The notes beneath the pieces were generated by a model that searched no databases, had not been told where the DNA came from, and worked only from the letters and a program-made list of their open reading frames with translations. The position numbers and the translations under genes were made by a program. From contig CP075495.1 of assembly GCA_021613535.1 (NCBI GenBank), positions 14,632,001 to 14,696,000 on the forward strand: 64,000 nucleotides of DNA, in the 5' to 3' direction. This document shows positions 2,479 through 64,000 of this stretch, one piece after another; the first letter of the stretch is position 1, and every line of letters begins with the position of its first letter. The DNA comes from Adineta vaga (lineage: Eukaryota; Animalia; Rotifera).

Positions 2479-2952
2479 AATTGATTTGAAAAGATTCAAA
2501 GATCACGATGATGAAAATCTTAGTGATGGACTAAATAATCTAAAAAAGACATAACGAAATATCGGAATTTTTTTAATCGATTTCAATACGATATAAAAGT
2601 AGGTCTATGTCTACAGACTCGCATCATGTAGACGACGTGTTACTCGTATATTTAGAATCATTCTCTTTCTTTTTCTATATATATTTTTCTTTTTCTTTTT
2701 TTCTTCTGTCTCCATGTGCATACAGACATAAAACGCACATGTTGACGAAGAATATTGTTGCTTTGTATGAAAGAATCAACAAATTACAACTATACACTAC
2801 TAGTCGATTTTTGAATTTCTATACAAAGAACAGATTGAAAATTTTTCTCTTTGTCTGTCTATTGACCCATCCAGGCCTCGTCTTTTTCGTTTGTCATGAA
2901 GAATCGTTATATATATATATAAATATAAATTGTATTTCTAGATCGGTACATC

Positions 2953-4443
2953 ATGTCGTGGATTTGGAATGAGAAAACAAATTTTATTCTTTTACATTCT
3001 ATTATTCTTCATCAACAACAATCAACAATCAATTGGTCATCGATTGTTCAAGATATTCAGTTAGAAATCTTATCAACTCCACAATTATTAAAAGTTCAAT
3101 ACGAATTTTTACTGGAAAATTTTCATTCAAAAGAAGATTCGTAAGTTTTCTTATGAAAATACGAATCATTAAATAGTGTTTGTCAGATCTAGAACATCTC
3201 TTTATATTGCAATCAAACAGATCTATTTACATTCATTATGTCAAAAAGTTGAAGATGGTTTACAAACAACAATAGAAATTGTTTATGAATTCATTCGACA
3301 TGTACGTTCTAAACGACTTCATATTCAAGATATTGAACAATTAATGAAAGAATGGAATTTTAAGTAAGAGATACAAATATTTTGTCAAAAAAAAAGAAAA
3401 CCTTTTCTCTTCAGCTCCTCATCAGATAAAGAACAGAAAAACAAAGAACGTCTTTTTAAAATATTAAATCGTCTTCGTGATTATATGCAAACATTACCTA
3501 ATAATGATCATCAATCGAAACTAGTACGAGACATACCATAATTATTTTTCATAATTTCATTTGTTTCTATTTCAAATTTAGATAATACATTCTAATACAA
3601 ATGAATCAATATCTGTAGAGAAAATCATTCAAAATGAACAGTTGGAAACAGTATCCGATAGCAATGATGAACCTTTAATTGAACATAAACGAAACGATGT
3701 ATTGCATTTACCTAATAGAGAAGTATGTTGAATCTGATTTGAATAAATAAATAATTATTTTGTTTATTAGAAATCATTGTTCACTCGTCGTCGTACTCGA
3801 TCATTGACAATAATGGCTGAAAATCAAGATGATAAAGTAAATATTGGTGTCGAATGGTTTGTTCCAAAATTTAAACGTCAACAAAGATCATCATCTTTAC
3901 ATGCTCAATGTTCATCAATACCTTCGATATCATCTTCAACATTACCAAAACAACATTTGGAATCGAATGGAACACGTAAAATTCGTTCATATTCTTTGTT
4001 CATCTTCTATTTTATTTAAATAGTTCTCACTACTATTGATAATGATGACTCGTCCGATTCAACTAACAATTCAAATGTTCGTCGTACACATACTCAACCA
4101 TCGGTATCTTGGTTACCATTAACAAATGAACAGGTTAATATGATCCAATATTTTGGTTTTTTAATTCGAATTATATTTTAATAGATCGCTGAAAAAGAAT
4201 GTCAGCAAACGAACTTAAAATTACTCGATGATCAACAATTAGTAAAATTAATTTTTTTCTTCATCGATATCGAAAAATTTCAATTGAATATTTTAGGATG
4301 ATGTATCATCGACAGATTCGGATTCAATTGAAGTTCAATGGTCTTCATCAAGAAAAACTAAGATATCTTCATCATCAATTTCTCATTCAACTGATGAACA
4401 TCATCAGGATAATAATTCATGTAAACGACAACGACTTACTTGA
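2953..4443 (+). CDS. Multi-exon protein of unknown function; N-terminus weakly SANT/BRD8-N-like
   Basis: Chain of short ORFs separated by ~50-60 bp GT-AG introns; W-x-E...L...I...NW pattern at the N-terminus; ends KRQRLT*. Confidence 0.5.
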
Positions 4444-57830: not shown

Positions 57831-58099
57831 CCCGGTCAAAAGAATAATGATGAAGAACCCAGAACGATGTTTCCCGGCTACGGATCCGCACGGAACCTGC
57901 CGGAAATCACGTCTTTCTGAGGATATTCTGGACAGTTCCAAAAGATTCCAACCGGAAAACCCAGGACAATGGAAGCAGTATTCCGATCGGAATTTCTCGG
58001 ACTGTTCCGGTGAATCCTAGATGGAATGAGCCTTATTCCCATTTCGCTTGTTGGCCACGAACATGCAGAAAAAACAAGATCAAAGATAATAGAAGATCA

Positions 58100-58132
<33 letters not shown>

Positions 58133-58413
58133 CGTCATAAGCGTATTGTCACTATAGTGACAATACGGTAGAGAAAGAAATAGGTTAATAGATCAAAGAA
58201 TAGAATCGACCCTAACAACAAGTCAAACGATGTATGACCATTTTTTCTGCATGTTCGTGGCCAACAAGCGAAATGGGAATAAGGCTCATTGTCGGAAAAC
58301 GACTGGAAGTTAGTCAGAAGCGAGCGGAAAAATCCGAAAATATCTGGTTCGGAATCCTACTTCCATGAAATTGCCGGAATGTTCTGGTTCTGGCTCGGAT
58401 TTTTCGACCTGGG
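57831..58413. mobile_element. Older MITE (CCC(A)GGTC... termini, many CCGG/TCCG motifs), host of a nested insertion
   Basis: Left CCCGGTCAAAAGAAT vs reverse complement of right end CCCAGGTCGAAAAATCC; GC-rich relative to flanks. Confidence 0.65.
58028..58287. mobile_element. Young 260-bp MITE, PIF/Harbinger(ISL2EU)-like
   Basis: Perfect 47-bp TIRs (58028-58074 / 58241-58287) starting GAGCCTTATTCCC; AT on both flanks; internal (GA)n tract and a 26-bp perfect palindrome. Confidence 0.88.
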
Positions 58414-58869
58414 AAGACATTTTGATTGTTTTTTAAAAGTAAAATCGACTAAAAATGCTAGACAAGAACCAAGTGAGTCGGTTTTAATGCCTGCATCGCT
58501 GATATTAGAGCGGCCCATACGAAAATATACAACACCTTGATTAGAACCATCAGTAGTATTGGACATTATCTAAATGAAGTTCCAAATAATCAAAAAATCG
58601 ATAGTTTTTATTCCTATAAAAATAATTACATAATTTATTAAAAGATATTGAACTTGACTATTTTTTGATTGAATGATATTATGTTTAAAAAGAACAGTTT
58701 TGAAAAGTCAAACTAAGAAGTGACTCACTTTGATTTTCTATATAACATCTTTTTTTACTATTCGTCGATATAAATACGTATGATGTGATAGATTAATGGT
58801 ATTTAAATAGAGAATTGAGCTCCCTATCCATTTAATGTATTGTTGCGAATTATTTATAATTCACTTCTC

Positions 58870-59840
58870 TGAAAGAAAGGGTTATATGCTTCTTAAATAG
58901 GGTCGTTAAAATGCTTAAAGTTTGTTTGTTTGTCCAAGCAAATCAGGTGAAAGCAGCGTATAAATCGATGAAAACTTACCCCTGATCATCGGACAACGAT
59001 TCGTCATATGTAATCGAGATCGAGGAATACGAATCTTGGGTTCCTTTCTCAAAAATATTTTTCTATGATCCACAATTAATTAATTGCTATTTCTTGTTTG
59101 TCTAATCCAGTCAGATTGCAGCAATATAAAAATTCATGAAAATTTACTAATAATCATCTTTATATGATTTACCCAAAAGTAGTCGAAGTCGAGGATTTCA
59201 AATCTGATGTTAGCTTTTCATAGTTCTAATCAATTATTATAATTATTGCGAAACTGAAAATAACCTGTTATTAAGCATAAAAGAAAAAATTCTGACTGTA
59301 TGTGAATTATTTAATCAAGCTACTGGGTTAATTGAAGAATTTTTTTTTCAGTAGAAGTTGAGGGTGTGGGTCTGCAAAGGGGAAAAAGCGGATCCTGGAT
59401 ACCCAAATCCTATAAAACTTTCGGACCCTCATGGCTCCCCATAAATCCTGACATCTCAAAAAGGCTGACTCTCGTGAATCCTGAAAGATACTCATGGGTT
59501 ATCATTGGTCATCATGAACTGTGTGATCGCAGGAACTATGAGGATCCAGGATCGGCCTTTTCCCCTTGTGTGGATGTATGTATGTGCGTACTCTGTGAAG
59601 GAACACTTACATCCACACTTTATTCCTTCCACAGAAAGGAGCGTCATCTGGAAAAAAGTTTCTGTGCGCTTTTGTGTCAGTGTCAAAGGTCAAAAAACCA
59701 TTTTCTTCAAGACTGTCTTAAACATCGGAAACCGAGAGTAGATTAAGGGTAGGATGATAGGTGGGGTCAATGTGAAGGATCAAGGGTAAAAAGTTAAAGG
59801 CTGCACACGATCAAAATATTGCTCTACCCTTCAGTACGAG
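58870..59840. mobile_element. Possible non-autonomous DNA-transposon remnant
   Basis: GC-enriched non-coding block unlike neighbouring gene DNA; no matching terminal pair found. Confidence 0.25.
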
Positions 59841-60782
59841 CTAAGTACGCGCTTTCGACAGATATAACATGAGATTACAATCAGTCGGTCGTTATTTATT
59901 CATAAAACCATTAAAAGTTTAGTAATATTGAACTAGAAACTATTGATCATTCTAGAGATGATAATTCAATAAATGAACACATAGGTAGAATCGAACCCGT
60001 AGCAGGTTTGAGAAAAATAAAGTACAGTAAAATTTGACTAGTTTGAACACTATTGGAATCAATGAAAAACGTAGGGGAATAAGCGAATCATATAAGAACA
60101 TCTTAGAGATACGATGGCATAGACATGCAACAGTCTCAGTTAACTCGGTGAGAGTCAGACTCAAACTTAGTTTATACTTTCATGTGTTTTCTTTTGCTTT
60201 TGAGAATATTTGATACACCACCAATTGTTCATACAAAATATATATCTCACACATCACGATAAGATGAACCGGTTTTGTTTTCTTTAATTCAATTAATTTT
60301 CTTGTTAAGATCTTTAAGGATAGACGTATTTGAAATAAAAATTGCCTTACGTCGAACTAATAGAATGAAATTAGTTTATGAGGATATGGAGCGTGAGCGT
60401 GAAAAGTAGAGACTATCGGTATCTACCCTCAAAGATTTCCTTTTCTGATTGAACTTTTGTTGAATATCACATGCAAAAATATCCTTTCTTAAAACGAACT
60501 CTTTTCTAAAACTCAAAAAATTACTAATGAAAAATACGTATCTTGAGTGTATACTGACACTGATAATCACACACGTCAGACGAAACTCCACTCAATACAT
60601 ACATTAACGCCATCTTTCTGCATAAACGAAGTATTCGCTTTTGCTGAAATCGTCAGTCTTCATTATTTTTTTCGAATAACAAAAATACAATACTATCAGT
60701 AAAGCGCATTTCTTTTCATAATAAACAAAATATATTCAATAGCTTGTATTCTCAACAAACTTTTGTGGAATTTAAAGCGACT

Positions 60783-62669
60783 ATGTACACATTTTCAACA
60801 TTACCGATTGAACTCGTCTATCGAATTTTTGATCATCTGTCTGGTTTTACACTATTTTGTTCAATGCAAAATGTTTGCCAACGTTTTAATCAAATTCTAA
60901 ACATTTATCATCGATATGAAGTAAGTTTCCAAAGTGCTTTACCTATTTTCTCATTTGTTCAAGCACACATGAGCCTCGCAACATCTAACTTAATCAGTTT
61001 ACTCAAAGAAAAAACAAATTTCACAATTCCGAAGCAATTTCCACGAGTCAACCAAACACAATATTGACTCATGCTATTAAAACAACACTTCCTCTCGCCT
61101 GTTTTTTTCTATCTATGCACATAGAATATATATCTTATTAAACATACACCCATGTGCCGCACAAGAATAAAACCGCAGCATTAAAACACCTTTCCCGTTT
61201 CAAACAAATGTCTCTATTGCCACTCTTAAACAATGCAACAACTATCTTTGAAACCCACCGAATAAAATAAAGTGAATTGTTTATATTCTGCCCCGACCCA
61301 ATACGATCTTTCGCAAACCAAATCTAAAAATAACAATCCAAAACCATTCAAAATAAACAAGTATCACTACCTTCAGTACAGTACTCATTCTACTCATCCG
61401 ACGATTCGCACATAACCTCAGTAATAATCAGACGAGCAACGATTTCTCTTTTCACTCCATGAACCCAGATTGAACACTTTCACACACTACCGCAACTCCT
61501 CTTGTATAATGCTATATCTAATTAAAAAACCTTACTCTAAAGTTTCGATTGCTTTAACCACATTCTCGAAAGGAATATTCTATACATAGACACTCACCAC
61601 ACTAAATCTCGAGAACAAGCAAATCGACGATCTAGGAGCACTACATATTGGTGATGCCTTGCGAACAAACACAGTAATACTCATTCGCTCTTGTCCTAAT
61701 TGACACATCCATGCTCTCTCTCGTTTATAGACACTCACCACACTAGATCTCGGGTACAATGAAATCGGCCATCAAGGAGCACAACATATTGGTGATGCCT
61801 TGCGAATAAACACAGTAATATTCATTCGCTCTTGTCCTAATTGACACATCCCTGTTCTCTCTCCTCTATAGACACTCACCACACTAAATCTCGTGAACAA
61901 TCAAATCGACGATCTAGGAGCACTACATATTGGTGATGCCTTGCGAATAAACACAGTAATATTCATTCGCTCTTGTCCTGATTGACACATCCATGCTCTC
62001 TCTCGTCTATAGACACTCACCACACTAGATCTCGGGTGCAATGAAATCGGCCATCAAGGAGCACAACATATTGGTGATGCCTTGCGAATAAACACAGTAA
62101 TACTCATTCGCTCTTGTCCTAATTGACACATCCCTGTTCTCTCTCCTCTATAGACACTCACCACACTAAATCTCGAGAACAATCAAATCGGCCATCAAGG
62201 AGCACAACATATTGGTGATGTCTTGCGAATAAACACAGTAATACTCATTCGCTCTTGTCCTAATTGACACATCCATGCTCTCTCTCGTTTATAGACACTC
62301 ACCACACTAAATATCAGGTACAATCAAATCGACGATCTAGGAGCACTACATATTGGTGATGCCTTGCGAATAAACACAGTAATACTCATTCGCTCTTGTC
62401 CTAATTGACACATCCATGCTCTCTCTCGTTTATAGACACTCACCACACTAGATCTCGGGTACAATGAAATCGGCCATCAAGGAGTACAACATATTGGTGA
62501 TGCCTTGCGCATAAACACAGTAATATTCATTCGCTCTTGTCCTAATTGACACATCCGTGCTCTCTCTCGTTTATAGACACTCACCACACTAAATCTCGGG
62601 GGCAATCAAATCGGCGACCAACAAAGAAAGTATCTCCGAAATGTTTTTGGAAATAGGTTGACGTTGTAG
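60783..62669 (+). CDS. F-box + RI-type LRR protein with one LRR per exon
   Basis: Exon 60783-60920 MYTFSTLPIELVYRIFDHL...MQNVCQRFNQIL (F-box, phase 0); 84-bp LRR exons at 61590, 61731, 61872, 62013, 62154, 62295, 62436; capping exon 62577-62669 with stop. The LRR exons are absent from the ORF track because the introns contain stops. Confidence 0.9.
61590..62620 (+). repeat. Tandem array, 141-bp unit (84-bp exon + 57-bp intron), ~7.3 copies
   Basis: Unit ACACTCACCACACTA...AACACA|GTAATA(C/T)TCATTCGCTCTTGTCCTAATTGACACATCC...TATAG recurs at exact 141-bp spacing. Confidence 0.97.
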
Positions 62670-64000
62670 TTTGGACTCGAGGGACATTGTGTTTTCGTGC
62701 TCTTTTCTGGAGAAGTTTTTCTGAGGAAACCGATGTGGTGAGAAATGAATACACAGTGTGCTTCGAAATCGTATTTATCTTACAATAACGTGTTTTGTTT
62801 TAAGCTCTTGATTTCCGACCGTGAGAGATGTGTTTATCATCTAAGTTGTTATAAAGCCATTTGGGATAGCAGTAGGAATAATAGAACAAATAAATAAGTA
62901 TAAAATTGCTAAGAAGGACGACCGATTATGCGTCTTATGAGCCTTTTAATGGGTCCGCTGCACTTATTCCCATCGCTGATCTATTATGAACGACTGGGAA
63001 ATTATTTCTTAAACATTCTGTTGTGCATGAAAACGTAGCAAAATATTCTTTCGAACTTTATTTTGAATATTTCTCATAATAAAGAGTTTAGCTCAAAGTC
63101 TGAGTGCCTCACAAATCGTTACTATATTTGTAACGTTAGAGAGTTGGGGTTGACGTCAAGATCAAGTGGATGACAAGTTTGACAACTTTATTTAGTTGCT
63201 TCTTTGATTTGACGTTTGACGTCTAATGATAGAAAGATGTTTTGTATTCGTACATCTTTCAAGATAAAAAAAGAAAGTTTTAGAGAAAAGAGTGTATCTC
63301 AGTTTCAACTAACTAATGTGTAGAGACACAATTTAGGATATAAATCGCATCTGGATGCAACTTCCGATATATTCGAACTTCAATGAAAGACGGCGAGATG
63401 CATTTGCAAACACAAAGAGTGTTTCATGTTTACATAGTGACCCGTACTTATATTCCCTTCCTATTCATTATCATTCTGAGAATTACAAGAGTATGATTAA
63501 TTCGCGAGTGGTAAAGTCGTTCTGTCTTGAGTTTAAACATATTTCTTTTTGAATATATTCATCATCGGTGTCGATGAAACCGACTATACTAGATCTATCG
63601 AAGTTTTTCATGCTGTGCATTCAAATAATTACACACGATAATGAGCATCTAGCTGTTGAATGTACATTCAAAATAGTTTCTTTATCTAATATGACGATTT
63701 TGTTTCAGTAATAATATATTTATTATGAATAATCGTTGATTGAGAACTTCGACGAGATGGAACGTTGAAAAATTGATATTTTACGAAAATGAAATATTTT
63801 TTATAATAAAGAGAATTTCTTGGACAAGATGAATCATACAAGCATAGTTAATGATTTATATAATCATCCATTTAGAATATTTATATGGTAAAGAATCTAT
63901 AAGTACTTTAAATTTCGTATGATATCAAAGCAGTATTTAATCATACATACGTATAATAATCATAATTTTATAGATGTCCTTGCTGATCGCACAGACAGTT

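Follow-up and report, generated by a model that had tools for sequence, protein, structure and literature searches.

A small Adineta vaga F-box gene built from 141-nt leucine-rich-repeat cassettes, a member of a large and apparently fast-diversifying bdelloid family

A 64,000-nt window of the Adineta vaga genome (assembly GCA_021613535.1, contig CP075495.1, positions 14,632,001 to 14,696,000) carries at window positions 60783–62669, on the forward strand, a gene that joins one F-box exon to an array of leucine-rich-repeat (LRR) exons, and this locus is a small, intact and probably expressed member of a large bdelloid F-box family. Taken as a whole, the reading that we favour, and consider probable, is that the family comprises germline genes for SCF-receptor-like F-box proteins with LRRs of the ribonuclease inhibitor (RI) type, diversifying fast in the manner of nematode and plant F-box families. 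The descriptive marks of an adaptive F-box family are present: a conserved F-box, excess change in the substrate domain and many young paralogs. The new element is the unusually regular exon-plus-intron cassette on RI-type LRRs; adaptively evolving F-box families as such are known.

The assembly consists of 100.8 Mb in six contigs, and the window lies ∼1.6 Mb from a contig end. Tandem Repeats Finder reported an array at 61586–62615 with a period of 141, 7.3 copies, 91% matches and zero indels, and script-based placement located eight exon starts at 61590 + n × 141. Seven units of exactly 141 nt each consist of an open 84-nt exon (28 codons) and a 57-nt GT..AG intron, and the eighth exon is a capping exon that ends in the stop codon TAG at 62667–62669. 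Every junction is in phase 0, including the F-box donor. The seven introns vary at six sites (positions 7, 25, 38, 41, 50, and 52) and have no indels; because each contains an in-frame TGA, intron removal is required. Chance origin of this regularity is excluded. The sequence-only reading had described precisely this architecture, namely 84-bp exons alternating with near-identical 57-bp GT-AG introns (about six variable sites, no indels), a capping exon and phase 0 throughout, and its description stands. The features, all on the + strand, are:

58860–60782, +, upstream flank common to paralogous loci (promoter / 5′ region), from blastn against 20 paralogous loci, without a long ORF
60783–60920, +, exon 1, F-box, 46 codons, ATG at 60783, phase-0 donor GTAAGT at 60921 (Pfam)
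60921–61589, +, intron 1, 669 nt, family-conserved length (662–670 nt in most copies)
61590–61673, +, LRR exon 1, 28 codons, type A (script-based placement, paralog comparison)
61731–61814, +, LRR exon 2, type B (Pfam LRR_6 1.4e-4 for the single repeat; contig junction at 61814)
61872–61955, +, LRR exon 3, type A (script-based placement)
62013–62096, +, LRR exon 4, type B, near-copy of unit 2 (script-based placement)
62154–62237, +, LRR exon 5, A/B mosaic (script-based placement)
62295–62378, +, LRR exon 6, type A (contig runs from 62378 into an exon start)
62436–62519, +, LRR exon 7, type B (exact 74-nt contig match at 62446–62519)
62577–62669, +, capping exon, half LRR plus family-specific C-terminal tail (Pfam LRR_6 1.2e-4)
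61674–61730, 61815–61871, 61956–62012, 62097–62153, 62238–62294, 62379–62435, and 62520–62576 (span 61674–62576), +, seven 57-nt GT..AG phase-0 introns, in-frame TGA in each
62670–63705, +, 3′ UTR and downstream flank common to paralogs; homology ends at 63705 in this copy only

The LRR exons alternate between type A (units 1, 3, and 6) and type B (units 2, 4, and 7), and unit 5 is a mosaic with an A-like 5′ half and a B-like 3′ half. Units 4 and 2 differ by 1.4% over 141 nt. The 669-nt intron that follows the F-box donor had been little stressed before. A hidden exon or linker domain within it was considered and rejected: it holds no ORF, its identity among paralogs (87–93%) is below that of the F-box exon, and contigs join the F-box exon end straight to an LRR exon.

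Exon 1 on its own exceeds the Pfam cut-offs for both PF12937 F-box-like (25.2 bits, cut-off 24.3; 1.4e-5) and PF00646 F-box (24.4 bits, cut-off 20.5; 2.7e-5), and eight LRRs follow as a C-terminal protein-interaction domain, in agreement with the earlier call of an F-box plus LRR gene. Single LRR exons fall just below the LRR_6 cut-off because one repeat is scored alone; spliced public relatives reach 80–119 bits. Exons of A. vaga were searched singly, and statements about the full-length protein rest on public proteins of related species. Comparison of the F-box exon with protein representatives returned mostly short ORF fragments and few useful spliced rotifer models.

The repeats are of the RI type: in the consensus of 230 cassettes they are exactly 28 residues long, position 10 is Asn, and an LxxLxLxxNxL strand leads into an RI-type helix. 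For a spliced A. steineri relative, the best solved matches are RI-like proteins, RNH1, NLRP, and NOD2 (3e-37 to 1e-27). The single-sequence AlphaFold model of the same relative is a regular strand/helix solenoid, with the strand at repeat positions 4–9 and the helix at 15–26; pLDDT is 80–93 in the LRR part and low in the F-box. The cysteine-containing ∼26-residue repeat of FBXL proteins is not seen in this gene, and LRR_FBXL15 gave only a faint match, on a relative. We infer that the product is an RI-type LRR F-box protein and a putative SCF substrate receptor.

In such a receptor the F-box would dock on Skp1 and the protein would present substrates to an SCF ubiquitin ligase. Eight Skp1-domain matches were found in the A. 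vaga genome. A predicted complex between a Skp1 exon (694–969 of the fetched Skp1 locus) and the F-box exon gave weak support, with a score of 0.35 compared with 0.02 for the best of three controls; contacts coincide between runs to at least 95%, and partner pLDDT is at least 68. In calibration, 51 of 78 solved complexes attained the mark, as did 2 of 108 mismatched pairs; with scores of 0.60 or below it was attained by only 5 of the 78 solved complexes and by all four passing mismatches (of 180). The prediction could also reflect memory of solved Skp1–F-box structures.

The locus is neither special nor singular in this genome. A genome-wide search for sister arrays, which the sequence-only reading had proposed, returned at least 261 matches to a double-cassette query (82–96% identity, introns included) and at least 142 matches to the F-box exon, 47 of them at ≥ 80% identity; all of these counts are lower bounds. 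The locus is therefore one of at least 47 close paralogs, in a family that extends over several bdelloid genera. All 20 other arrays that were fetched share the same gene plan, with 7 to 24 cassettes per array, a 46-codon F-box exon that is 83–98% identical and ends in the same donor, and, in most, a first intron of ∼669 nt; the cap-exon tail was found in 18 of the 20. Internal units are intact in 287 of 310 cassettes, 230 of which have an intron of exactly 57 nt, and the F-box exon is intact in all 21 copies examined. Close copies are concentrated towards chromosome ends, with 33 of 47 lying within 3 Mb of an end (36% expected, P = 1.6e-6). This particular copy could be a decaying member, because its array is the second-shortest of the 21 and flank homology is lost at 63705.

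Related genes occur in other bdelloids. Public proteins of A. ricciae and A. steineri, annotated as "F-box domain-containing protein", have the F-box directly joined to 28-residue LRR_6 repeats, and in the underlying DNA the cassettes measure 141 and 142 nt and their introns are unrelated in sequence. In a Rotaria socialis gene of the same plan, the F-box exon is followed by a first intron of 1138 nt and then by 84-nt exons, between which lie cassette introns of 57, 57, 59, 196, 57, 57, and 57 nt that are only ∼51% alike. Judging from these gene structures, the cassette plan and its period are older than the Adineta/Rotaria split. Between the two genera, intron length has been kept and intron sequence has not. 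The 57-nt length may reflect an intron-size optimum, the tandem register, or both; the first of these is suggested because introns of 47–60 nt in the Skp1 gene show such lengths to be ordinary in A. vaga. A length kept without its sequence makes the family a suitable object for work on the limits that tandem register or intron-size optima set to gene structure. In bdelloids this LRR module also occurs fused to B-box/RING (TRIM-like), caspase, ADP-ribosyltransferase, kinase, and receptor domains.

We profiled variability over the 230 cassettes whose intron measures 57 nt. Amino-acid entropy peaks at codons 8 and 9 (2.8–3.0 bits), followed by codons 11 (2.2), 6 (1.7), and 14 (1.5), and it all but vanishes at the leucines, isoleucines, and asparagine of the framework (≤ 0.1 bits at L2, L5, I20, and L24). 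Mean intron entropy equals that of third codon positions (0.43 vs 0.42 bits), indicating that the introns behave as neutral sequence. The near-identity of the introns is thus attributed to copies that are young or homogenised by recent duplication or conversion, and special conservation of the 57-nt introns was rejected on this entropy and on their difference between species.

Relative to these neutral proxies, change at the five variable codons is in excess. Within arrays, the hypervariable codons show pN 0.32 and pS 0.19 with an intron divergence of 0.09, and between arrays the values are 0.38, 0.20, and 0.17; these are descriptive counts on recombining repeats, distinct from a formal site test, and few sites underlie the pS values at the five codons. 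Codons 6, 8, 9, 11, and 14 change two to three times faster than introns, and even in cassette pairs with identical introns pN at the hypervariable codons is 0.24. The remaining 23 codons have a pN/pS of 0.43–0.47. In the F-box exon, 16 close paralogs share 96.4% identity (98.4, 96.9, and 94.0% at codon positions 1, 2, and 3). By these counts, both the F-box and the framework of the LRRs evolve under purifying selection, and an excess of amino-acid change at repeat positions 6, 8, 9, 11, and 14 is shown, in descriptive terms, against neutral proxies.

These positions are those at which a ligand face would be expected to vary. In established LRR structures, the x positions of the LxxLxLxxNxL motif face the concave surface, so the fast-changing codons are expected to lie there and would line the ligand-binding face of the solenoid. 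In the cassettes, variation gathers on the x positions of LxxLxLxxNxI and lies above neutral proxies, which supports the sequence-only reading. The targets would be variable proteins of pathogens, parasites, mobile elements, or the host itself.

The same variation could be the product of genomic drift, the genes being ordinary SCF adaptors or dispensable copies under birth-and-death and concerted evolution, with variable positions that are merely unconstrained. Plant lineage-specific F-box expansions have been interpreted along these lines (PMC3030570), a few cassettes and cap exons of the family carry stops or frameshifts, and a bdelloid pathogen-challenge paper (PMC11258130) leaves F-box, leucine, and ubiquitin unmentioned. 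Unconstrained codons, however, should match introns and synonymous sites, and the hypervariable codons outpace both; moreover, the large intact majority of cassettes, the 21 intact F-box exons and a plan kept since before the Adineta/Rotaria split speak against dispensability. We consider drift unlikely and retain adaptive diversification as the preferred reading.

Variation appears to be supplied by exchange between cassettes. For 73% of cassettes the nearest relative belongs to the same array (5% expected by chance), and 22 pairs of 141-nt units are identical, including two-unit and four-unit blocks repeated within single arrays; three genes that are close relatives but sit on different chromosomes also have identical units in common. 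Where close paralogs run colinear for most of their length, the differences between them amount to whole cassettes. The repeated multi-cassette blocks point to unequal crossover, and in-frame gain and loss of cassettes by unequal exchange on an evolutionary scale is well supported by these comparisons. The spread of 7–24 cassettes per paralog and the identical blocks thus bear out the sequence-only reading on in-frame gain, loss and duplication of cassettes in the course of evolution.

Divergence in the strand-coding half of the cassette is decoupled from its surroundings, correlating with intron or helix-coding-half divergence at r = 0.05–0.10, whereas divergence of the introns and of the helix-coding half is mutually correlated (r = 0.5–0.8). 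This decoupling fits selection for many strand variants per array, short conversion tracts, or both. Of the processes by which the sequence-only reading had specificity remodelled, unequal crossover is backed by the identical blocks, and short-tract conversion is one of the fitting readings of the decoupling. In the mechanism that we propose, unequal crossover and short-tract conversion between 141-nt units would supply variants and selection would keep them, with diversification placed in the germline and over evolutionary time.

Transcript evidence comes from Logan contigs of four sequencing runs from three studies, whose RNA status is guessed, none being recorded as RNA; junctions with exact removal of the predicted introns argue that the runs are RNA. 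Contigs leave the exon ends at 60920, 61814, and 62378 directly into the first letters of an LRR exon, and one enters 61731 from the last letters of another exon. A 95-letter contig matches 62446–62519 without mismatch over 74 nt, ending at the last exon base, and this segment is 100% identical only at this locus genome-wide (next best 97%). The 57-nt introns are spliced out in family transcripts, and the spliced transcripts on which the earlier proposal depended are thus present, for the family, as exon–exon junction contigs.

For this copy itself, splicing is likely. On the F-box exon, paralog states (60830 T>G and 60844 G>A) appear in every contig, so these contigs were rejected as expression evidence for its own F-box exon, and a full transcript of this copy is putative. 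The junction contigs are mostly paralog-derived.

These data also bear on whether the stretch is a gene at all. A tandem array with 91% matches, in a short copy that has lost its downstream flank, might be a non-coding satellite, a pseudogene, or an assembly artefact. All eight LRR and cap exons are open with correct splice signals, exon–exon junctions occur in contigs and the framework codons are under purifying selection, and on these grounds the three possibilities were rejected. The units also differ pairwise by 1.4–6% and parts of the stretch are held by several independent runs, and an array of only 1.1 kb is easily spanned by long reads, which argues against an artefact. We regard this account as very improbable.

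The architecture also invites the view that diversity arises at the transcript level, cassette skipping yielding many receptor isoforms per gene and being the very point of the arrangement. Every cassette exon is symmetric and in phase 0, and in Rotaria socialis the annotated 196-nt intron, inside which an 84-nt LRR exon lies intact together with AG and GT signals, could be the trace of a skipped exon, although it may be a gene-prediction choice. Among the A. vaga contigs, which are short and beyond whose resolution isoforms lie, none carries a skipped cassette of this locus. One 164-letter contig joins an F-box exon directly to a type-B LRR exon, but it carries paralog letters, and several paralogs start with a type-B exon. 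We judge diversification by splicing improbable. The broader proposal that the phase-0 84 + 57-nt cassette is kept by its use, with exon skipping at the RNA level or conversion of strand halves equipping an asexual animal with a combinatorial intracellular repertoire coupled to ubiquitin ligases, is one to which we give little weight; if true, the cassette repertoire and the LRR fusions (caspase, ADP-ribosyltransferase, and TRIM-like) would constitute a previously undescribed animal immune receptor system.

A further question is how the germline family spread. Copy number might reflect mobility and bring the host no benefit, the gene having been carried by a transposable element, for instance by a Penelope-type process in which introns are retained. 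Non-coding flanks are common to paralogs on all six chromosomes, over ∼1.9 kb upstream and 0.8–3 kb downstream, at 90–97% identity. In blastn comparisons with 20 paralogous loci, the 5′ homology boundary lies at 58860 in the three copies where a boundary is visible; upstream identity is 81–84% far upstream and 92–93% in the last 500 nt. Downstream, identity is 87–93% over 62577–62850 and 93–96% over 62911–63705, and paralogs continue for at least 2.1 kb past the equivalent of 63705 at 95–97% identity, this copy alone breaking off.

Penelope pseudo-LTRs carry hammerhead ribozymes. Neither the window nor the flanks nor the downstream continuations of 9 kb matched any Rfam family, hammerhead included (gathering threshold or E ≤ 1). 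Among the compared copies the 3′ boundaries vary by copy, and neither terminal repeats nor target-site duplications were seen, so defined transposon ends were rejected despite the common 5′ boundary; the gene thus lacks both the ribozyme match and the common 3′ boundary of a host gene mobilised by Penelope pseudo-LTRs. A second gene in the conserved downstream flank was likewise rejected, the examined part containing no ORF above 71 aa. In A. vaga, Penelope elements have been reported to copy host genes together with their introns, an LRR gene possibly among them, and the same study placed LRR proteins among expanded families likely serving defence (Arkhipova et al. 2013, PMC3846280). Element-mediated or segmental copying of the family is possible, and the flank checks give it no positive support. 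Mobility would in any case leave the site-specific amino-acid excess unexplained, and we consider spread as mobile cargo a rather poor candidate for the family's copy number.

Diversification of germline receptors, which we prefer, has its closest parallels in the F-box families of Caenorhabditis and plants, which are likewise large and lineage-specific, with a conserved F-box, a fast-evolving substrate part and a location on chromosome arms or ends. Their substrate domain is FTH or FBA, in contrast to the LRRs found here. We know of no repeat-per-exon cassettes described in those families, nor of diversity generated there through expansion and contraction of arrays. Expanded F-box families are reported to combine an F-box under purifying selection with a substrate domain under positive selection, and the role proposed for them is ubiquitination of foreign proteins, against pathogens (Thomas 2006 as cited in PMC8120010; Ma et al. 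2021, PMC8120010).

Other LRR systems resemble the family in part. Ralstonia GALA effectors combine F-box and LRR in one protein, and the GALA structure PDB 9j7j matches a relative of the gene at E 5e-29; these are bacterial injected effectors, however, intronless and with their own 24-residue repeat type, and we saw no sign of recent transfer between them and the family. Classical FBXL proteins (Skp2, FBXL2, and TIR1) place an N-terminal F-box before a substrate-binding LRR solenoid of ∼26-residue cysteine-containing repeats, whereas here the repeats have 28 residues and no linker domain separates the F-box from the first LRR, their exons being spliced together directly. The LRR class itself is that of ribonuclease inhibitor and NLR proteins, whose genes are also modular and consist of symmetric exons with a whole number of repeats in each. 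There, one exon covers an A+B repeat pair (57 residues) and the intervening introns are long and unrelated, in contrast to the single-repeat exons and homogeneous exon-plus-intron unit described here; RI and NLR genes also lack an F-box and a 50-gene family of arrays.

Lamprey and hagfish VLRs likewise use LRR cassettes as units of diversity and vary on the concave face. Their assembly is somatic, with intronless donor cassettes entering a germline gene that is itself incomplete, whereas the germline genes here are complete in 21 of 21 cases (start, spliceable cassettes, and cap exon). The cassettes of A. vaga are instead exons with spliceosomal introns, and the protein is predicted to be intracellular (F-box, no signal peptide exon seen).

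We found no published account of the family in the literature on bdelloids or Adineta with F-box or LRR. Bdelloids are the textbook ancient asexuals, and previous work on their defence against pathogens has centred on horizontally acquired genes. This F-box/LRR family points elsewhere: to dozens of candidate ubiquitin-ligase adaptors in which the predicted ligand face outpaces neutral sites, and whose repeats could be added, removed, and exchanged in frame by mitotic or ameiotic recombination. The family is thus a testable candidate for the non-sexual generation of recognition diversity, in which the structure of the genes exposes the mechanism by which they may change.

The focal gene is part of a longer unit that is common to paralogs on all chromosomes. 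The paralogs share a 5' boundary of this unit, at position 58860 of the window, and downstream the unit includes a non-coding stretch of ∼3 kb that is 95–97% conserved, more than the gene itself (locus L051, 1–2337). The focal copy is truncated at position 63705. Within its upstream flank, a 56-nt segment (59435–59490) is missing from four paralogs (L035, L039, L046, and L049).

Immediately upstream of the family-shared flank, which starts at 58860, lies a perfect 50-nt inverted repeat (58025–58290, with arms at 58025–58074 and 58241–58290). Between the arms are an (AG)16 tract and also a short palindrome, and the whole structure resembles a miniature inverted-repeat element or a hairpin.

Paralogous arrays carry both coding defects and insertions. 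Two neighboring cassettes of L036 (4812–5096) contain a frameshift or stop, while the rest of this 24-cassette array is intact, and the cap exons of L040 (at 2967) and L050 (at 5470) have an in-frame stop that leaves them ∼12–14 residues shorter. Cassettes 4 and 5 of L044 are separated by a 1371-nt insertion (2602–3972), and an insertion of ∼208 nt lies within a 57-nt intron of L039 (3776–4040), the flanking exons being intact at both loci.

In the Rotaria socialis gene L059, which has the same F-box and LRR cassette plan, an annotated 196-nt intron (3376–3571) harbors an LRR exon of 84 nt that is intact and has its AG and GT signals. This annotated intron resolves into 57 + 84 + 55 nt, and the exon within it is either skipped or was left out as an annotation choice.

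The public protein P0009 (198 aa, ORF-type) carries a Tc3-transposase HTH domain at residues 65–125 (3.7e-12), and its residues 153–198 match the focal F-box exon; it may represent a transposon adjoining, or fused to, a member of the F-box/LRR family. The ribonuclease-inhibitor-type LRR module of the family is fused to other domains in public proteins of Adineta, Rotaria, and Didymodactylos:

LRR-module fusion partners: B-box/RING, caspase, NAD-arginine ADP-ribosyltransferase, kinase/U-box, GPCR, and NACHT (P0156, P0159, P0160, P0168, P0204, and others)

Some of these predicted proteins may be merged gene models. Taken together, the fusions point to a wider sensor-plus-effector repertoire, for which a separate study may be warranted.
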